From positions 186,001-250,000 of the forward strand of contig CM074821.1 in assembly GCA_037447605.1 (NCBI GenBank): a stretch of DNA of 64,000 bases, written 5' to 3'. This stretch comes from Zygnema circumcarinatum SAG 698-1b (lineage: Eukaryota > Plantae > Zygnematophyceae). Made by a program: the position numbers and the translations under genes. Shown here one piece after another: positions 2,890 through 57,981 of this stretch; the stretch's first letter is position 1; each line of letters starts with the position of its first letter. The notes under the pieces are model-generated. The model saw only the letters and a list, made by a program, of their open reading frames with translations. It made no database searches and was not told the origin of the DNA.

Positions 2890-5239
2890 ATGCTGCTCAG
2901 ACGCATGCGCAAGGGCGCTTCGGCGCTCCTCTCGCCACAGAATGTAAGAAGGCAGTGCGATCCATGATTAGGGATTTTAAAACCATGCTTTGGTACAGAT
3001 ATTGACTTCTCTGTCTGAAATGAAGAGAGGTAACTCGTTGTGTTTCTTGCTGCTTTTCACAAACGTGCGGTTGTGGCTGCAGGGTCGGTTTCCTCCTGCC
3101 GCTGCTGAATCCAGACAACGACTGGCTGACTCCTCTGCGGGAGAAGGTGTGCATGCTTGCTCAGCTGTCGTTTGCTCACAGAAGAGGTCGGAGAAAGTAG
3201 GCGGGAGAGAGTCAGGGAGAGGGAGAGAAGGGAGAGGGAGGAAGGGAGGCTGGGAGAGATAGGGGAGGGTGGGAGAGTGATTGCTTGGAGTTTGTTTCCT
3301 CATTATTGATGTTTTCATCTAGGCTTTTCGAAGGAAGAGAAGGTAAGAAAGTAAAGTGCAAGCAGTGAGTATTAACTAGGATAGAAACACACAAAAAAAA
3401 AATTCCACGGCTGACTGCCAGATGTCAAGCCGGGGCAGTGCGTGCAACTTGCAGAGGCTTTGAAGCAGGAAGTAGCAGCCATGCTAGAATCCTTCTAGTG
3501 AGGTGCTTCCCCCTCGGCAACCCCTGTGCTATGCGATCTGGAGCAGTCTTTCAACAACAAGCACTGCCGTTTAGGTGATTATTTTTTCTAAATTGACGTG
3601 GTTGATAATTCATGCGCATATGCGTGGTCTGTTCGTTGGTGATATCAATTTTTCTCTGTCATTTGACTTGTACAGTGAATCTGCTTCGTCTCCTTAGGTT
3701 CTTTTGAATGTCTTCTTGAAATTGAACTCGGGCAGGGGAGCAGGACTATAGCTGGAAGAGGATTTGCTTCATGGGCGGGTGGTCGACCGGACATTGGAGC
3801 ACGAGCACGGGCTTTGCAGCAAAAGCGAATGTGGAGTCTTGCTCTCGGAGGGGCCACTGTTGCGGGATTTGTTATAGTCGTGCTGAATACTTTTCAAGAG
3901 AGCCTTATGTTCTACATTACTCCTTCTGAGGTAAGAACAAGCGCCTTGGGAGGATACGCTTGGGGCAATTTCTTGATTGGTGAGGGTGGTCGGTTCGTGC
4001 TGAAGTAACAAAAGAAGAGCTTCAAAAGGTAAGGAGGACAAGCTGACTGGCAAAGTCGCTTCTGCATCTTCAAATGGCATAAAGACACTAGAAGTGATAA
4101 GTTACGAGGTGTTCGTTCAGAGCCAGCATTTATTGTGATTTTGTAGTGTTGCAGGCTTTGCAAAAATTTAGCGCAGAAACATCGCGGAAACGGTTTCGCC
4201 TTGGAGGGTTGGTGCTTGAAGGAAGGTGGGATATCTATGCTCGTACAATGCTATCATGTTGCTCACATGTCTCTCCATGCTAATGCAGCAAAGGAACTAA
4301 CGAAGTGGGTATGCTGATGTATTGAACAGTGTGCGGCATTATTCTGGTGCTGCTGAGATGGAGTTTGTTGTAACAGACCTGGCAACAGATGTAAGTATAT
4401 TCTGCTTGTCCCAGTTTTCGTCCACTAGTTGACAGTGGCTTTTTCTACAAGAATGATGCCTCCTGTACGCTACCCTTCCGCCAGTTGCACTTTGTATGAA
4501 ATTTGTTTCCTTATGAACTCTGCCTTTTGTATAATTGTAGTGAACATCGAACAGTTTGGCTTTGTTTTGTCCTTCATCTCATCCTTTGTCTCACTGTCAC
4601 TCCATGGGGCCCGATGTGCAGATTTTGGTGCGATATAGAGGAGCGCTGCCCGACCTGTTTCGTGAGGGCCACAGTGTAGTGGCTGAAGGGTTCCTGAAGC
4701 CCCTGGCAGAGGAGAGGGAGGGGAGGGAGAGGACCTCGGAGGCTGCCATTAGTGAGAATGCAGAGACGCAGGAGAAAGCTAGAAGCCTAGGCTGCTACTT
4801 TGCTGCGGCGGAGGTTTTGGCTAAGCATGACGAGGTAACGACTAAGATCTGTAGATCTGTATATCCGTATCATCTCCCACTCCCTCCCTCCCCCGCCTTC
4901 CTCTCCATCTCCCTCTCTCCCTCTCCCCCTCCCTCTCCCTCCCCCTCTCTCGCATTAGATGTCACTGATTAATCTAAAAAACTATCAATGTTTTTGTCAG
5001 TGTTCTTCCCTCATTGATATATGGTTTTTGTTCCACTGCAGAAATACATGCCCAAGGAGGTGGCTGCAGCCGTGGAACGGAACAGGATTGCGTTGGAGGC
5101 CACAGAAAAGGCTGCCAAGGAATCTGATGGTGCTCTCATTGCAGCGCCTGTGATGGCTGCCAAGAGCGGGAAGCCAAGCAAGCTGAGCAAGGTCGCTCAG
5201 TCTCCTTCTCAAGCGCAACAGTATGACATGAGTGGCTGA
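2890..5239 (+). CDS. CCME: Mitochondrial cytochrome c maturation heme chaperone CcmE; core exons ~3698-3930, 4155-4225, 4330-4390, 4622-4834, 5042-5239; 5' presequence exons and the start at 2890 are tentative
   Basis: Spliced translation RPDIGARARALQQKRMW...FYITPSE/ALQKF...FRLGGLVLEGS/V...MEFVVTDLATD/ILVRYRGALPDLFREGHSVVAEG...VLAKHDE/KYMP contains the heme-binding HDEKYMP motif; Arg-rich MLLRRMRK start. Confidence 0.92.
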
Positions 5240-5696
5240 ACGCGGCGGGGGGTTCCATGTTATGTTCTTTGAAGCTGACAAACGGGAACAATTTGAACAT
5301 TTTTTCTCTTTTAAAAAAGAAGTCCTGTCTCACGGCGAGATTAACTGTGCCTTCTGCCCATCAAAGATGTCATCCGACACAAGTATCGACACAAATATCT
5401 AATGGCAGGAGCGGGTAGGCTTTTGGTCCTGGCTACTTGGGAGTTCGTTTGTCAAGGCTTTCCAACTATTCAATCACAAATTCTACCCACCTACACTTTC
5501 CGAAAAATTCCAACGCACCCAAGTGTTTAAACCCCGAACATTCCTTCCCTAGAGCCACTTAACGCCACAACCCCCCTCTCCCTAATCACCTACAATTTGC
5601 AGTCACCTCTGGAATCCACCACCACCACCACCACAACGCCCTCAAGGCTGCCATAAATCACACCGCCCCATCTCGTACCGTATCGCCAACCTTCCT

Positions 5697-7098
5697 CTAG
5701 TCCCGAGGAAACAGGCGAGCGTCGAGCTGGAAGGTCGGCGTGAAGAGGCGGCCCCACGCGAAGAAGGTGGCGGCGAGGCTGCTGATGGTGCCCGTGCCGA
5801 TGACCATGTTCACCACCACGATCTGCACGCACGCGGCGGAGAAGGGGGACACGCCCGCCATGATGAGGCCCGTCATGGCGCCCGGGAGGGAGATGAGCCC
5901 CACCGTCTTCGCATTGTCCAGCACGGGGGCCAGCGCCACCGTCAGACACCGCCGCATCTGCTTCGCCATGGCCTGCCGGGGAGTCGCGCCCAGGGCCAGG
6001 GCCGCCTCCACCTGCACACTCCCTTTCGGCAGAGGTTAGTGTCAAGAGCGAAGTTGTAAGGAGTGTAGATAGAGAGCGAGGGGAGGGGGGAGAGAGTGGG
6101 AGGGGGAATGGGAGAGAGAGAGTGGGGGGGAGAACGGGGGTGTGAGAGTGGGTGGGAGAGGGAGGAACGGGAAGGGGGAAGGGGATGGAGGGGGGGGCGG
6201 GATGGAGGGAGGGAGTGGGAGAGGAGTGGGAGAGAGCGAAGGAGGCGGAGAGGGAGAGAAGAGAGCCCCAAAAGGAGAAAGTTAGTCTACACTCACTCTG
6301 TCCTTCTCCAGGCGGACCTCCTCCAGCATGCGTTTCAAAGTGACCCCGGTGACAGTCATAGAGTTTCCCACCAGCATGCCGGCCAAGGGAATAACGTACT
6401 GCGCCCGTAAAGGAAAGATTTGGAGCGACAGAAGCACTACCAAGCTCCCGCTGCTCCCGCAGAGGACAGCTAGCCCAGCCACCATATGGCTTCCTGGCAG
6501 CCCTTTAGCACGCTCTCCAGCAGTGTATGCAGCAGCGCTCACCTGGCAAGCATTCAAGATATAAAAATCGTTAACTCACTTGATTACAATCACTGTATTG
6601 AACATACCATTCAAATTGCAGCAGAGGGAGAATGGAAAGCAAGTACTCCAGTCCAAAGTTCGGACATTCTGGCCACTCCTGACGCTGCTAGTGAATGAGT
6701 TGATTCAGACTGCCTTAAACAAACATTGAGGCGAGATTAGATCTCAATAATTTGATGTCAAACGACCTCACCATGATGCAGTAGGCCGTCATACATGCCA
6801 ACACGCCCATCGCTCCCTCCTGAGCGAAGACGAAATGGAGGAAGAACCCGACAATACAAAGTTGCACAAAAGCCCGACCAGCTGAAAAAGCAATGTCTTT
6901 CCCAAGACCCAGTTTCTGCCAATACGAAAGCCCGAAAGCAATGGCCACTAGCAGCAGGGCCAGTGATGCTTTCACCAGTCCATCCTTAAACGATAGAATC
7001 ACAGGTCCGCCCACCATCAGATCTTGGCTCTCCACTTTCCCCATGGTTTCCAACTCCGGCAGCATTGTTAAGAAGAGATCCTGCATGCCAGCCATCAT
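5697..7098 (-). CDS. ALS3: UPF0014 membrane subunit of bacterial-type ABC transporter (ALS3/STAR2/ABCI16, FetB-like); exons (7098 or 7044)-6772, 6542-6297, 6011-5697
   Basis: GLVKASLALLLVAIAFGLSYWQKLGL, RAFVQL, VSAAAYTAGERA, YVIPLAGMLVGNSMTVTG, VEAALALGATPRQA and KTVGLISLPGAMTGLIMAG; best Kozak start ACCATGG at 7044. Confidence 0.93.
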
Positions 7099-8787
7099 CT
7101 TTGCTTCTTGTATCGAGCAATAGCGGCTGCTCCTCTCCTTTGTCTGCGTCTTGCTTCACAGGATACTCCGAGTGGAAAGAGAGCAGATCCTTCACGGGGA
7201 TAGAGGAGCTTCTTTGCGCAAGTTCAGAGGGTGAGCAGATGTCCACAATTTCGCCGTTGTTCAACACAACTACGAGGTCAGCAATTCGCTGGACCTGTTC
7301 TATGCTATGTGATGTCCACAGAGCAGTAAGCCCGTTAGAGTCTCGCCGATTCCGAATTGTGGCTTCCACGTGCAGTGTAGCACGCTGATCAAGAGAACTC
7401 GTCGGTTCGTCAAGAAGGAGAACCTGCATGTCGGGATTTTTCGAGTTATTTAAAGTTATTTAAGAATCACCAGTGCACCGAGAACAGAAGTGACTGAAGT
7501 TTAGAAAACAGCCGTCAATGGCAGTGCACACTCGAATGGGGCAGCCGTCACATCAAAGCTCATTTAACATCAACCGTCATTTAAAAAGTTGCGATAAGGA
7601 AGGTTCAGCACGTTGTGCAGAACCGTTCAGAGAAAGAGATACAAAAAAAAAAGGTACCGTAAAAGTATATATGAAAGTTACCTGTGGGCGGTTTGCAAGA
7701 GCTCGTGCAATAGCTACAGACTGTGCTTCACCTCCCGAAAGCGTGCGAGCCTGTCGCTTTGCAAAAGTGGGCTCTAAATAGACAGAAGCCAACAAGTTTG
7801 AGACTTCCTTCTCGCTCAGCTGCTTCCCCTGAAGCCGCAGACCGTAAGCCAAATTTTCTTCAACTGTTTCTGTTGTCATGACACAAAGAAGCCCCTCTCA
7901 GTTGAAGCGTGGAAACACTATTGTTGGACTTCTGGCAGTTTGTAATAAGGACTTTAGTAGATTTGTCAATTGGAAATAGCTCATGGAATGCTGTTGTCTA
8001 AAACAACTAAACAATTGCTCATCCTCAACAACAAAACAAAAAAGTGCAACGACAGCGGAGAACGGACCGTCAAACAAAGCTGGGTTCTGAGGGACGATGC
8101 CGACTGTTCGACGCAGATTAATCACATTCCGTTCAGTGACATCGCAGCCGTCCAGAAACACGGAGCCCTTAGGAGGCTCCCACAACCGATTGATGGCGCG
8201 TAGAAGAGTTGACTTTCCACTGCATCCCTTGAAACCCCCCCAAGCCTCATTAGCTTCCGTGTACGGACTCAAGCATCCCCCTAAACATGCGCTTCAGACA
8301 TGACCTTTCCGACCCGACCAAATGTAGACCTTTCCTTCGACCATGTGAAGGCAGTGAGATTTTGTTTCTCCCTCTCCCTCTCCCTCTCCCTCTCCCTCTC
8401 CCTCTCCCTCTCCCTCTCCCTCTCCCTCTCCCTCTCCCTCCCCCGCCCCCTCGACCCCGCCCTCTCTCCCTCTCCCTACCCCTCCTCAGTCTCCCTCCAC
8501 CCCTCCTTCCCTCCCTTCCCGTCATCTTCCCCCTCTACCCCTCTACCCCTCCCTCCCCACTCCCTCTACCACTCTCCCCTTCCCCCTCTCTCCCTCTAAT
8601 CTCTCCCCCACACCTCCCCTGCAGCTTCAACCCCAAATGCACACCTGCCACTAGGTCCAATCAGGCAGACTATGGCGCCACGTGGCACGTCCAAAGTACA
8701 GTCCCGCAGCACGAAGCCGTTGCTCAGGCCTCGCAGAGAGATCCGCGCCTCGCCCCCCCTCGCCGCTGCCTCCTCCCCGCCCGCCAT
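6986..8787 (-). CDS. STAR1: Stand-alone ABC nucleotide-binding subunit STAR1/ABCI17 (FetA-like); exons 8787-8645, 8219-8068, 7869-7682, 7423-6986
   Basis: Walker A GPSGSGKST formed across intron 1, LRAINRLWEPP, signature LSGGEAQ, Walker B VLLLDEPTSSLD, H-loop TSHSIEQVQRIAD; all junctions GT-AG and in phase. Confidence 0.93.
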
Positions 8788-9193
8788 TGCCGCGCCCTGC
8801 AAGCTCCACCCCTTTCAAGTCGAGAGAGCCGTTCCATGTCCATGTCCTCAACGGCCTAAAGTTCACCGACATTCAATTGCGTCACATGCTGAATTTCGCA
8901 GTTGACCCGTAAATTTTGAAGAGTTTCTGCATAGATAATGGCCGTTACAGGTCAAAGTCAATACCGACGTGACGTCGTTCGCAACGCTGATTGGCTTTAG
9001 GGGTTCCACGTCAGCAGAGGCGCGTGTCCGGCACGCAGTTGCCAGAGTGTCGGCGCGCGTTCGCCGCCTGCCCGGCGCGCGATTGGACGGACAGTGCTTC
9101 TGACGTGATGCTTGCTCGTTGGTCCAAACCCTGTACGGATTGGTTTCTTGTCGGTATCCGTACGGATGGAATGGATAAGAAAAAGGAATTTGT

Positions 9194-9815
9194 CGATAGT
9201 GATAAATCCACCCCTTGTTTGGATCGACAAACCCCTTTTTTCACCGGGCAGATTTTAAAATAGACAAAAAAAGGTTAATAACGGAAAGTGGGAAAATGCA
9301 TTTTTCCCACTTTTTTGAAATCGATACACACCTTTTTCCGTTGGGCAGATTTTATTTTTGCTAACCAAGGAAAATGATATCCCGTCACCCCATTTTGAAT
9401 CTCCCACCCCCCTGAATTTTTTTTTTTGGGAGCGTCCGCTACGAGATCGTTAGCAAGTGTGCGTCCTTCACATGTGCGGTAAATCTCAGCCGCCGATTTT
9501 TTTGCAGAAAGCAGCACGACAACCGTTCGATATGTAGACGGGCTCGTTCCCAGCGAATGGCACGCGCCCACGTGTCCCACCAAAGCCGGCTTGTACGGGC
9601 AGACGCTCGTACGGGCAGACGCACTCTATAAATTTTTGACCTTATGTTTGTAAAATAAAATCTGCCCGACGAAAAAAGGCGTGTATCGACTCCAAAAAGG
9701 TGGGAAAAAAGCATTTTCCGTTTTTAAACCTTTGTTGCCTATTTTAAAATCTGCCCGGCGAAAAAAGGTGTGTGTCGAATGTCGATCCAAAAAAGGGCTG
9801 GATTTCTCACTACCC
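9194..9815. mobile_element. Degenerate fold-back MITE of the same family as 28415-29353
   Basis: Arm ~9194-9360 is the reverse complement of ~9650-9815 (TAGTGATAAATCCACCCC... versus ...GGATTTCTCACTACCC); internal similarity to the 28-29 kb copy; no clear TSD. Confidence 0.75.
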
Positions 9816-11493
9816 TTCATTTTTTTTTTTGAAAATGGAAAAATGAAAATGAAAAGTTTTCGTTTACGAATTCAGTTGCCGTCAACACAATCAGATGTTA
9901 GCTCGATTCCAAAGTAACAAGCCGGGCTGCGCCGGAAAGTTTGAAAGCGCCTATGAACGTGGTCATGAGTGGCTGCCAACGGCCGACCGAATATTCTATG
10001 GCGAAAATCCGTCGATTGCGCAATTTTCCAACAGCGACACGCATCGTTCACGACAGACGTTCACTTGGCGCGGGGCTATGGCTTTTAGCAAACTCTACAA
10101 ACTCGACAGAGAGGGAAGGGGCTCAATGCTGAATGCTCTTTCTATAAAAGAGGGGTAAAGTTCACATCGCCGGATTCTCTTTTTTTGAGACGTTCAGCCT
10201 ACGTATTCAAGAGTTGCGAACTTGCTAACATTAGAGATCTTAGCGACTCTTAATCCCACTCCTGATGTCAGCTTCCTCCAGTTCATTGTGGAGGAATGGG
10301 AGTAATGGAACCGCCATTTTTGCCACGTGGGTGCACAGCATGCATTCTTCTTTATTTCTAACTTGAGTATCCGATTATCGTGACACAATGAACATAGGAA
10401 CTTTTGCTGTTTCCAAAACACAGCTTGTCAAAATTACGAACCTGAAACCGCACACCAGTTTTCTATACGAGCAGGACCACTGAGATGCACTTGGTTTTAA
10501 CAGAAACCAGTCGACCGCACCAGTAAACAGCCAACCCAAGCTGATCACATGGAAATAAGGGCCTTAGATAGGCAATGTCTGTGGCGGCAAAGCTTAAGCT
10601 CAAAGAACGACCAATACACAAAAAACCGCCCTGCTGACATAGCCGATGCGACCCCATTGTATGACAGAAAAGTGAATGCATCAGCCCTAAGTTTCCTTTC
10701 AGTAAATTGAAATCATCAAACTTACCTCTCCACGCAACTCACGACGGAGCAGAGCAATGAGGGACAAGCGGCAAAAAGGAAGAGCAAAAGAGTGGAAAGG
10801 AAGAGAGAAAGAGAGTGATAAGGAGAGAGAACGACGAGCGAAATGAGGGAACGAGTAGGTTCTGTGAGAAAAGTGAGAGATGGAGGAACAGTGACACAGT
10901 GAAAGAGAGGGGGAAAGAGAGAAAGGGAGATTCGTTGAAACCGTCTCATATGCTGCACTTTCATTACCAACATCACCAGAGCTACATGAAACCATAGGGA
11001 GGGTCACGCAACGAGCCGTGTCTGCAACGCTCTAACGATGACTCTTATTCCTTTCACAACAAAGGAATCACCCAATGCGCTCGTCTACCACATGTCATTT
11101 GCCAATCCAAAGGACACAGGTCCAGGGAACCACAGGGAGGGAAGAGAGGGAGGGAGAGGGAGAGGGACAGGAACAGGGAGAGAGAGGGAGAGGGGGAGGG
11201 AGTGGGAGAGGGAGAGGGAAAAGGAGGGAGGAAGTGGGAGTGGGAGAGGGAGAGGGAGAGAGAGGGAGTGAGAAGGGCGAGGGAGAGGGAGGGAGAGAGG
11301 GAGAGCATGCATGCCACTGCTGTATCAAGCAGCCCACGGCTGCCTACAGGGGAGCTTTTGAGCCTCACTCTAGGAGGTCTCTGAACTTCACCTTCGAAAC
11401 TGCAGCTAGTTCTCAGTCTTATGCTTTCATGCGGCCTCGCAGGAGAAAGAGTTTGATGCGGAACATGACGTTATAGGGCGAAGAACTTCAGCC

Positions 11494-14400
11494 TTAGTCG
11501 TCGAATTCAGCCGCGTGTTCTAGCAAATAATTGGCTGCCAGCTGCTCATTCTTGTCGCATGCAAAGAAGGCTTCAATCACAAGCGCTCTGTCGAAGCCCA
11601 TGCCTTCCAACTACACCAGCACACAAACCTATCGGTAGTAAGCAAAAGCGAGGAGCGAAAACAGCAGAAATCTCTGCCTTAAGCTCAATGGCTATGAGGG
11701 GACAGCCAAGACCCACCATTCACATCAAAGCAACAGGAGCAGAAAAGTCACTCACCCTGTCAATAGCTTCCTTCTCTTCTGGTGTTACATTGATGGCTTG
11801 GGGAACGCCACCTCCCAGCTGGGCCAGCGGATCCCTGAGCCAAAAAGCCAATAAAGTTTCTAAGCATCATCTCCATAAGAGATCAATTTGCACCAACCTT
11901 AAAGAATGTCACGCTGGACAGTACGGATTAAAAAAGGAGAGCAGTCAGTGTAAGGAAAAAAATACTCCGAAACAGTAAGCAGATTGAGCTTACCCTTGAG
12001 CTTCACCAATATCCTCATTAATAAGACGAAGAAACTCGGCCTGATTGCCATTGATAAGCTGCAACAATTGCGGGTTTTGTTTTCCCAATTCCTGCAGCAT
12101 GGGCTGCATCACGTTGCACCACCCACCTCCACCAATTTAACAGGGCTGTCTTGAACAAACCAGCTAAGGTATTCACAATGACACACGTCAACCATGTCGC
12201 GCGTTAGGTCGCTGGAATGGGATCAGGTTTGAAAACTTGCTCTACTCAGAAAATACGGGAAGTTGACAACATTGCTAGCCTGCTATATCACTTCTTGTGA
12301 TTTATGTGATACGACACAGTCCTGCAACATTTAATGGCGGAAATTGAACGATAATCATGCCACACTTCGCAACAACCTGATTCTTTCAATCCTTCACAGA
12401 CTGCAAAAAGGATCGGAAAGAATAAGACCAAGTCACGAATAGGACCATCTTTAAAAGGCATGCTGAATCTCCAATTTACCTGCAGAATTTGAGGATTCGC
12501 CTGAACCATCGTTCTCAAGGCTTGAAACTGTCCTCCCACATGCCCCGTGACAAAACAAAATTAGTTCCGGCAAAACTGCGTGATCTCGAAACTGTATTAA
12601 GAAGCACTCTATAAGCTCTATAAGCTCTAAAACGATCATAATTTTCCAATCGGTCTCCCACCTGTGCATTATTTCGAAGGAAATCCAGTGCTCCAGGGCC
12701 AGCTGCTCCTGCCCCTCCAGCTCCTAGACCGGGCATTCCCTGCTTCCAAACAGAGGCAGATACCAAAGTTCAGAATAGACCAACAGCTCCTACAGAATAG
12801 TACATCAATGTTATCATCCTCGGTTGAAAGCTTTCATACCATACCATCGTACAGAGAAACGCGATAAGTGTGAGAAAATTGCATTTTCAAGAACAAGAAT
12901 GCACAGATGACCAACAGTTGACATGCAACATCAGCAAAAGTCCAAGGCCACATTAACCAGATCACGAGCCGCAACAAGGTGGCACTGATTAAGAAACTCT
13001 CACATGATCCACCACTCGAGATATCCATCCGAATTCATCACGGAAATCAGGAGCCAATAACTTGAAAGTAAACTCGGTCAGCTTCGGCAAGATCTTTTTC
13101 GCAATAAGTCATGTTTGTACGAGTGCAAACATCCAAATCCAAACGGGTGGACATTGTGGCAAAGAAGATAAGTGGAAGTTTTACCTGTGGAAACAAGTCA
13201 AGAGGTGCAGCATTCGGCCCTCCTCCAGACGCAGGGGAAGGCACTGGAGAAGCTGCTGCAGGTGCTCCTGGACCAGAAGCAGCTGCTTGCCCAGCAGGAG
13301 CCCCTTCAGAAGGTGCACGCGCGACGGGAGGAGGAGCTTCTGCTACTTCGGGTATACCCTGTTGCTCCCAGCCCTTACATAGATCACACATTCCATTCCT
13401 CCCCAAAGACTACTGGACAAAACACTCCCTTTCATCGCCTTCTGACAACGTATCTCACTACAGTAGGAAAAACGAAAGCCAGCGTCTCAAACACATGAAA
13501 TGATGAACCGCATCACTGCGTTTGACAAGGCTGATCAAGTACGCTTTTTCTTGAGGAAAATGGACCAGCATCTAATCTGAGAAGGCATCGAGGCTTGCTC
13601 CCTACAGAATATAGGTACTCCACAGCTCGTTCTGGATTGTTAAATGCAGCTCGTAGGGCTCGCACAACAAGGTCACGTTCCCAGGAACCTCCCCCCATGT
13701 CCATAATCTGCTGAATTGTGTTCTCCAAATGCGACCCAGCCACCAAGTTTGAAGCTGCTGTGCCGTACGCATCTGCAGTTGCTGAAGCATCGACTGGCCT
13801 GCATGCAGAGAAATGGAGGCAGGCAACACAACTTGACAGTCAAAAACTTTTAAAGTAGTCGAATACCTACTTCACTCATGCATATAAAACAACGCTCCCA
13901 CGGGAGCTGCTTACTGCAGTTATTCGCAGTTGAAATACATCATATTCTACTTCTGCAGGAATGAATACACCAGAACTTTGAAGCAAAATTGAGAAGCCAA
14001 AACGACGAGAAGAAAAGCTGACAAAAATAACCTCTGCAGCAAAAAATAATGCATGCAAGAAAAACAATTTAGTATGTCAGGTCTCAATAGTAAGATACTA
14101 ACTCTGCTTCTAAAGGAGCAGGGGCTGCTGGTGCAGGGGAAACAGCTGGAGAAGGAGAGGGAGGGGTCGGGGCTGCATCATCTGGGAGAGGAGCGGACTG
14201 ACATCCAAGCCCAAACTATTTGTCAGCACTAGCGAATCCTTCCAGGCTCTTAGCCAAGCCAAAGACGGTAACAATCTAGTACAGATATTTGATACTTAAT
14301 ATTGATCTCTACGCCCAAACCCCAGCAGCTCCTCCATGGGAAAGCAATGTTCCCAATTAAGTCGAAACAATAGTGAGTGGCATGAATGTCAGTGCAAAAA

Positions 14401-36299: not shown

Positions 36300-37170
36300 C
36301 CCTGAACCCTAAACCCTGAACCCTGATCCCTGGACCCTGAACACTCAACCCTGAACACTAGACCCTAAACCCTGAATCCTGAAATCTGCGTCAAAAAAAA
36401 TCTCCAAGCTATTAATCATGAACCCTGAACCCTGAACTCTGAACTCTAAACCCTGAACCCTGAACCGTAAACTCTGAACCCTGAACCCTGAACCCTGAAC
36501 CCTCAACCCTCAACCCTCAACCCTGAACCCTGAACCCTGAACCCTGAACCCTGAACCCTGAACCCTGAACCCTGAACTCTGAACCCTGAACCCTGAACCC
36601 TGAACCCTGAACCCTGAACTCTGAACCCTGAACCCTGAAGCCTGAACCCTGAACTCTGAACCCTGAACCCTCAACCCTCAACCCTCAACCCTCAACCCTG
36701 AACCCTGGACTCTGAACCCTGAACCCTGAAGCCTGAACCCTGAACCCTGAACCCTGAACCCTGAACCCTGAACCCTGAACCCTGAACCCTGAACCCTGAA
36801 CCCTGAACCCTGAACCCTGAACTCTGAACCCTGAACCCTGAACCCTGAACCCTGAACCCTGAACCCTGAACCCTGAACCCTGAACCCTCAACCCTCAACC
36901 CTAAACCCTGAACCCTAAACCCTGAACTCTGAACCCTGAACCCTGAACCCTGAATCCCCAACCCTGAACCCTGAATCCTAAACCCTGAATCCTGAATCCT
37001 GAACCCTGAACCCTAAACCCTAAACCCTAAACCCTGAACCCTGAACCCTGAACCTTATACCCTAAATCCTAAACCCTAAACCCTAAACCCTAAAAACCCT
37101 GAACCCTGAACCCTGAACCCTGAACCTGAATCTTAAACTCTAATTCTGCCCTAAACCCTGAACCTTAAAC
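36300..37170 (-). repeat. Interstitial telomere-like heptamer array, mostly (TTCAGGG)n with TTTAGGG, TTGAGGG and TTCAGAG variants
   Basis: Roughly 110-120 CCCTGAA/CCCTAAA units on the plus strand; degenerate units trail to ~37475. Confidence 0.93.

Positions 37171-44772: not shown

Positions 44773-57981
<13,209 letters not shown>

Follow-up and report, generated by a model that had tools for sequence, protein, structure and literature searches.

How can two proteins be made from one eukaryotic locus when the second coding sequence starts inside the first? This question is raised by a gene pair of the zygnematophyte alga Zygnema circumcarinatum SAG 698-1b, which lies on the minus strand, from 8787 to 5697, of a stretch of 64,000 nucleotides (GenBank assembly GCA_037447605.1, contig CM074821.1, positions 186,001 to 250,000; hereafter the window, in whose numbering all coordinates are given). 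The two genes, STAR1 and ALS3, are homologous to the nucleotide-binding domain (NBD) and the UPF0014 transmembrane domain (TMD) of the plant STAR1/ABCI17 and ALS3/STAR2 ATP-binding cassette (ABC) transporter, a complex which, like its roles in aluminium, iron or phosphate responses, is known for rice and Arabidopsis only (PMC6168647; PMC11528361). We consider it most likely, with a confidence somewhat better than even, that the pair is expressed as a bicistronic mRNA of operon ancestry from which ALS3 is translated by scanning ribosomes. A literature search returned no description of STAR1-ALS3 linkage or co-transcription, and a structure search no solved structure for the TMD.

An exon shared by STAR1 and ALS3

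The locus comprises six exons, whose boundaries are given in Table 1, and five introns, all GT-AG, of 425, 198, 258, 229 and 285 nt. Read from the ATG at 8787, the STAR1 frame encodes an ABC ATPase of 306 amino acids (aa) that ends at a TAA (6988-6986) and contains Walker A, Q-loop, signature, Walker B and H-loop, as expected of a stand-alone NBD. Domain and homologue searches were run exon by exon; they returned Pfam and NCBIfam ABC matches on that basis, with the ABC_tran match in exons 2-3, and a UPF0014/FetB profile spread over the three ALS3 pieces (positions 3-66, 69-151 and 154-242 of 242). The ALS3 frame is offset by +1 and is open from 7155, next to a TGA (7158-7156), to the TAG at 5697; both frames are thus open across 167 nt (7155-6989). 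Starts at its ATGs 7098, 7095, 7086, 7065, 7044 and 7017 would give 295 to 268 aa and an overlap with STAR1 of 113 to 32 nt. The exact start lies between 7098 and 7017, the phmmer match to the homologous locus L001 reaching into the overlap and the BLASTP match not. Every coordinate of an original prediction made from the letters of the window (exons, frames, ATGs, overlap, STAR1 stop and its distance to the next exon junction) could be reproduced from the sequence, and its description of two genes in overlapping +1 frames with no intergenic DNA holds for an intact STAR1 and an intact FetB-type permease. This arrangement is not due to chance, since the genes encode two subunits of one complex and their order recurs in four other eukaryotic loci.

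The stretch is present in twenty sequencing runs from eight studies. Four runs from four studies were aligned over 6270-8360: X6, a DNA run, and X7, X8 and X12, which are RNA-like and come from three studies other than that of X6. No letter is inserted or missing in any of them over this region, which excludes the 1-nt assembly indel at the junction that the original prediction had kept in view. X6, which may have contributed to the assembly, spans the region in one contig with a single substitution, at 7078, that is silent in the ALS3 frame and replaces a Ser of the STAR1 tail by Pro. A one-base assembly error, or a fusion gene broken in this strain, would account for the offset in that a single indel would join both frames, but given one DNA and three RNA-like runs free of indels, and relatives that carry two separate open reading frames (ORFs), we regard it as next to impossible.

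In X7, X8 and X12, introns 2, 3 and 4 are removed exactly as in the gene model, while they are unspliced in X6. Loose ends in the RNA-like runs continue into exon 1 and exon 6, and an X12 contig of 1132 nt leads from exon 1 through exons 2-3 to 6767, inside ALS3. No joint was found inside the exon 7423-6772 in X7, X8 and X12, whose contigs still include intron-retaining forms at about 1-5% of exon depth. This bears on an alternative splice from the donor at 7681 to a second acceptor at 7081, or on another hidden intron, that would join STAR1 to ALS3. The motif before 7080 resembles the acceptor at 7424 and the join would be in frame, yielding 450 aa; however, this product would be without Walker B and H-loop, no pyrimidine tract precedes 7081, and no such joint was seen in three runs that keep forms of such low depth, so that we hold a spliced fusion to be most improbable. 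Within exon 4, 157 frame-restoring GT/GC-AG pairs are possible on paper; none is used in the RNA contigs.

Coverage of intron 4 consists of one low-depth contig, which spans its whole length and gives no hint of a 3' end in it, and neither AATAAA nor TGTAA occurs between the STAR1 stop and 6772. A STAR1 mRNA must hence either end within these 214 nt devoid of both motifs or run on through ALS3. A bicistronic STAR1-ALS3 mRNA, as proposed in the original prediction, is likely: the spliced X12 contig extends from one ORF into the other, and as regards single molecules the evidence consists of contigs. At 7343 and 6508, in X8 only, two contigs match the exons over about 30 letters before continuing into unrelated sequence; these are probably library chimeras.

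Gene order in relatives and prokaryotes

We searched for homologues first with the ALS3 part of exon 4 and then with full-length matches; the length range of these searches excluded fusion proteins of more than about 530 aa, and a blank in them says nothing on fusions. The linkage in relatives that the original prediction proposed to look for is there: STAR1, a stop and ALS3 follow each other on the same strand in four other eukaryotic loci, with stop-to-ALS3 spacers of 217 nt (L001), 71 nt (L002), 155 nt (L017/L020) and 241 nt (L019). L001 is genomic, and the intron positions flanking its shared exon are the same as those of the window. L002 and L017-L020 are probably transcript contigs, because the ALS3 introns are missing from them (mosses have also lost these introns); the ALS3 of L019 is 81% identical to that of L020. 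In the ALS3 tree, the four loci form one clade with Mesotaenium (Shimodaira-Hasegawa-like approximate likelihood ratio test, SH-aLRT, 95), and the window row sits on a long branch inside the group above Klebsormidium. Window ALS3, which has a full UPF0014 domain, is placed in the streptophyte clade (SH-aLRT 99), as befits a member of ALS3/STAR2. The first ALS3 intron position is common to algal and angiosperm genes, and both positions are shared with Klebsormidium nitens. In quick trees, window STAR1 is a long branch that falls without resolution among algal STAR1, land-plant STAR1 and Chloroflexota NBDs; its nearest row is L001 (56%), with which it shares an intron position. Mesotaenium has two ALS3 copies (P0012 and P0272).

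The STAR1 proteins of the relatives end 10-17 residues past the conserved end, while that of the window runs about 60 residues further. Since STAR1 of the relatives ends where the ancestral stop lay and a spacer follows, the overlap of 32-113 nt is probably derived, by a later loss of the STAR1 stop in the window lineage.

In the sampled land plants, STAR1 and ALS3 lie apart: no STAR1 was found near ALS3 at these loci, including within 10 kb in Physcomitrium, the Ceratodon locus tags place the two genes on chromosomes 10 and 4, and no STAR1 adjoins ALS3 in eukaryote-like metagenome loci of land-plant type. In contrast to these genes, those of the window share an exon, and window STAR1 carries a tail of 60 aa and lacks internal Met. 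L003, from the same metagenome as L001, and L183 represent a second algal paralogue of ALS3 with no STAR1 ahead of it; in L183, the 394 nt upstream contain no STAR1 and many ATGs. In K. nitens (DF237259.1, L181:6288-10149) the pair is reversed, with an unannotated three-exon ALS3 just upstream of STAR1 on the same strand. This ALS3 frame is broken by one extra G in a G-run near 7721, possibly a sequencing error (the row carries an X at the break in our trees), and the annotated first STAR1 exon (8001) is in fact the in-frame ALS3 tail; splicing could accordingly give a TMD-NBD fusion, the reverse of the bacterial order.

Among 80 prokaryotic loci from GTDB, the NBD lies directly before the TMD in 76, two are in-frame fusions and two are too short; a 4-nt start-stop overlap is found in 41 of the 76. 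The natural NBD-TMD fusions are L132 and L170, in a Thermoleophilia and a Nitrospinales genome. The nearest prokaryotic relatives of both subunits belong to Chloroflexota (Anaerolineae, Caldilineaceae) and Desulfobacterales, with identities to the algal queries of about 50% in the TMD and 55-66% in the NBD; the origin trees being quick, midpoint-rooted and without a clade test, no donor is claimed. Scores fall under the FetB equivalog cut-off (176 against 410 for P0003), which makes the TMD protein of the algal locus FetB-like rather than FetB. On a bacterial-type contig, a Fur-family gene (L182:220-654) is divergent from the NBD-TMD pair, which fits an iron-related role. ALS3/STAR1 was probably acquired by horizontal transfer early in streptophyte evolution and is absent from chlorophytes (review, PMC11528361). 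Co-transfer of both genes as an operon would be the simplest reading, and the present linkage may well descend from it.

The window locus resembles bacterial operons of the FetA-FetB (YbbL-YbbM) type in its NBD-then-TMD order on one strand, and differs from them, mostly arranged with a 4-nt overlap or a short gap and internal ribosome binding, in its five introns. The original prediction of a retained bacterial layout is thus supported for adjacency and order, which are shared by the algal loci and by most prokaryotic ones, the same bacterial groups being closest to both subunits; it does not extend to the long overlap, which is neither bacterial (4 nt being typical) nor present in the relatives. 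A comparable case is the ent siderophore operon of Wickerhamiella/Starmerella yeasts (10.1101/399394), also a bacterial operon kept linked in a eukaryote; its RNAs are mostly monocistronic and some possibly bicistronic, while in the window one exon holds parts of both ORFs and the sequence bears a signature of scanning.

Start codons ahead of ALS3 and the route to its translation

This signature is a depletion of ATGs, assessed against counts expected from dinucleotide shuffles. The 805 nt from the STAR1 start to the ATG at 7098 contain 2 ATGs where 8.9 are expected (P=0.003), and the corresponding counts ahead of ALS3 in the relatives are 3 for 8.7 in L020 (P=0.005), 0 for 4.5 in L001 (P=0.001), 1 for 3.8 in L019 (P=0.046) and 0 for 2.3 in L002 (P=0.041). 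The controls gave observed-to-expected ratios of 0.82-1.39 in 3' regions, 1.11 in introns and a median of 0.86 in bacterial NBD genes (n=66); in K. nitens, where STAR1 does not serve as an upstream ORF, it has 9 ATGs for 7.4 expected. At the protein level, window STAR1 has no internal Met compared with 2-7 in 44 full-length homologues, and a Met that is invariant in 23 land-plant rows is Ile in the window. A synonymous-shuffling test of out-of-frame ATGs is weak taken alone (window P=0.048, relatives not significant).

The same depletion characterizes the bicistronic genes of chlorophytes, in which leaky scanning was demonstrated by mutation (PMC11291117). Like those loci (PMC7896298; PMC11291117), the window locus and its relatives have two independent ORFs in one spliced locus, in different frames and with a short spacer or none; their ATG ratios of 0-0.34 compare with published medians of 0.49 and 0.43. 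The differences are a streptophyte host, a 306-aa enzyme as first ORF, ORFs that are two subunits of a complex of bacterial origin, an overlap of up to 113 nt rather than a touching stop and start, an ORF1 start context that is not clearly weak, and evidence from contigs and sequence rather than from long reads and proteomics. Judged by its structure and ATG depletion, the window locus most likely works as a leaky-scanning bicistronic locus.

We propose the following scheme. A single RNA polymerase II unit would give a spliced six-exon mRNA with two separate ORFs, the STAR1 ATPase first and the ALS3 permease second. Some 40S subunits would initiate at the STAR1 ATG (8787); others would get past it by leaky scanning or, should the leader extend to 8837-8872, by re-initiation once a short upstream ORF that overlaps it has been translated. 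These would move on along about 800 nt of STAR1 coding sequence with hardly any ATG and begin ALS3 at 7098/7095, so that both subunits of one ABC transporter would be made from one message. Single molecules with both ORFs, ALS3 translation from them and the scanning route are what we infer from the contigs and the ATG counts. Ribosomes translating ALS3 would clear the downstream junction marks, which may allow the message to escape nonsense-mediated decay (NMD). As to origin, an early streptophyte would have taken up a bacterial NBD-TMD operon whose linkage persisted here and in the zygnematophyte-like relatives and came apart in land plants, the overlap of about 110 nt arising later in the window lineage through loss of the STAR1 stop.

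Scanning permits the ALS3 start to precede the STAR1 stop, a layout that termination re-initiation handles poorly. The original prediction had listed re-initiation, +1 frameshifting, alternative splicing and an internal promoter; leaky scanning, now the best supported route, was missing from that list, on which frameshifting and splicing are disfavoured, re-initiation is awkward and the internal promoter persists as a rival. If the mRNA is bicistronic, ALS3 could be reached by re-initiation after STAR1 termination, which here would involve backward movement, or by internal ribosome entry. The spacers of the four relatives are ATG-free and the first ATG after each STAR1 stop is in the ALS3 frame, as re-initiation would have it, and 80S re-initiation on a transferred operon is inducible in yeast (PMC11952965). 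In the window, however, the STAR1 stop follows every ALS3 ATG by 32-113 nt, the first ATG near it (6983) opens 3 codons in another frame than that of ALS3, and the loss of ATGs inside STAR1 would be left unexplained by re-initiation; the RNA structure at the junction is not unusual (z = 0.0) and none is common to the spacers. We regard both routes as distinctly improbable.

A programmed +1 frameshift between 7155 and 6989 would instead produce an NBD-TMD fusion protein. Both frames are open over the stretch it needs, and fusions do occur, in frame in the two prokaryotic loci and possibly as TMD-NBD in K. nitens. In the relatives, however, STAR1 ends at a stop and the spacer behind it is closed by stops in the frame of ALS3, which bars a frameshift into ALS3; the junction has no stimulatory structure above shuffles, and frameshifting gives no reason for the ATG depletion. 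It is in our view very unlikely.

Several observations weigh against the scanning scheme itself. Firstly, start contexts, read by single positions, are G at -3 and G at +4 for STAR1, A at -3 and G at +4 for the ALS3 ATG at 7095, and T at -3 for ORF1 of L020: the STAR1 context is not obviously weak and looks adequate, so that leaky scanning past this start would call for a very short leader or for the upstream ORFs at 8872-8837 that overlap it. The latter matter only for transcripts that start 5' of them; contig 5' ends near the STAR1 start are at about 8779 and 8758. Secondly, a first ORF of 306 aa exceeds the typical chlorophyte ORF1 (medians 600 and 291 nt), and the STAR1 stop, 214 nt ahead of the next exon junction, is a potential trigger of NMD. 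Thirdly, the source organisms of L002 and L017-L020 and their nature as DNA or RNA were deduced, and the reversed order in K. nitens means that an ancestral NBD-TMD order in streptophytes is not proven. Fourthly, 4 of the 66 bacterial NBD genes also have an ATG ratio below 0.4, and the depletion in the window is strongest in exon 4 (0 compared with 4.3 expected, P=0.001), exons 1-3 alone giving 2 compared with 4.4 (P=0.12); as the latter is not significant by itself, an internal ALS3 promoter or a leader starting near exon 4 also fits. Finally, assembled contigs cannot prove one molecule; overlapping RNAs can merge in them.

The last two points are the basis of the main rival, in which two transcripts overlap: ALS3 would be made from a shorter mRNA driven by a promoter within intron 3 or exon 4, and STAR1 from a long or truncated mRNA. 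The marked loss of ATGs in exon 4 upstream of 7098 would then be that of a 5' leader, a TATA-like hexamer lies in intron 3 at 7671, and the transferred yeast ent operon has turned mostly monocistronic with some overlap (10.1101/399394). Conversely, intron 3 coverage is no higher than that of intron 4 and is nil in X8, and the junction contigs that flank exon 4 are similar in depth in three studies (a weak point, depth being a poor ranking measure). Loss of Met and ATGs also reaches the 5' half of STAR1, as seen for the Q-loop Met of the window and in L020 (2 ATGs compared with 5.7 expected, P=0.027), and spacers down to 71 nt leave no room for a terminator and a promoter. Overlapping transcripts are a serious contender that we nevertheless think unlikely, and scanning along one bicistronic mRNA is the account we retain.

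Surroundings and significance of the locus

Table 1. Coordinates of the features of the STAR1-ALS3 locus in the window.
Feature	Position	Strand	Remarks
Exon 1, coding part	8645-8787	-	STAR1 start ATG 8787 and first half of Walker A; loose ends in X7, X8, X12 mark the joint to exon 2
Exon 2 (STAR1)	8068-8219	-	Remaining Walker A, Q-loop; only two out-of-frame ATGs before ALS3: 8142 (6 codons), 8127 (1 codon)
Exon 3 (STAR1)	7682-7869	-	ABC signature motif
Shared exon 4, 652 nt	6772-7423	-	STAR1 end (Walker B, H-loop, tail) and ALS3 start; unbroken in DNA and RNA contigs
Exon 5 (ALS3 middle)	6297-6542	-	Gene model, UPF0014 match, run contigs
Exon 6 (ALS3 end, TAG 5699-5697)	5697-6011	-	Gene model, domain match; joint from exon 5 seen as loose ends
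Probable former intercistronic spacer	7099-7165	-	Purine-rich (0.66), ATG-free; now STAR1 C-terminal tail absent from relatives; deduced from alignment of C-termini
Dual-coding overlap	6986-7098	-	STAR1 tail in frame 0 (TAA 6988-6986) and ALS3 N-terminus in +1 frame
Upstream out-of-frame ATGs	8651-8872	-	8872 (73 codons), 8843 (39), 8837 (37); ORFs overlap STAR1 start and stop inside exon 1
Acceptor-like motif, similar to true acceptor at 7424	7081-7089	-	No splice to the motif detected

The ALS3 end faces a convergent CcmE gene (3771-5240, plus strand), with about 460 nt between it and the ALS3 stop; upstream of STAR1 lies a gene of RAD23 type (about 11490-12760, minus strand) that encodes an XPC-binding domain. 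About 400 nt upstream of the STAR1 start, 9180-9830 holds a fold-back element resembling a miniature inverted-repeat transposable element; its inverted arms are nested, 45-68 nt long and 78-90% complementary, and it contains internal subrepeats. Further away, a CHASE-domain exon followed by a histidine-kinase-like exon forms a cytokinin-receptor-like gene (48029-53500, plus strand) interrupted by a very long CT/GA repeat (about 50900-53400), and the plant telomere-type heptamer forms two short interstitial runs at 37011-37094.

According to a 2025 paper (PMC11952965), there is no known case of a transferred operon that has retained its polycistronic structure. We tentatively advance, as a possibility that falls a little short of even, that a bacterial operon has been translated as one bicistronic mRNA ever since it entered an early streptophyte, and still is in algal sisters of land plants, having gained introns, been purged of start codons in a first ORF of about 300 aa and come to be scanned across a 110-nt overlap, while Klebsormidium resorted to a probable TMD-NBD fusion and land plants split the genes. 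The window locus may also serve aluminium or iron handling. If true, a bacterial operon would have persisted, naturally and for a long time after its transfer to a eukaryotic nucleus, as a translated polycistron, and leaky-scanning bicistronic expression would reach beyond chlorophytes to the algae related to land plants. The locus would offer a testable system for how subunit ratios are set and NMD is avoided on one mRNA, and would represent an intermediate state in the evolution of a transporter that is central to how crops tolerate aluminium and sense phosphate.

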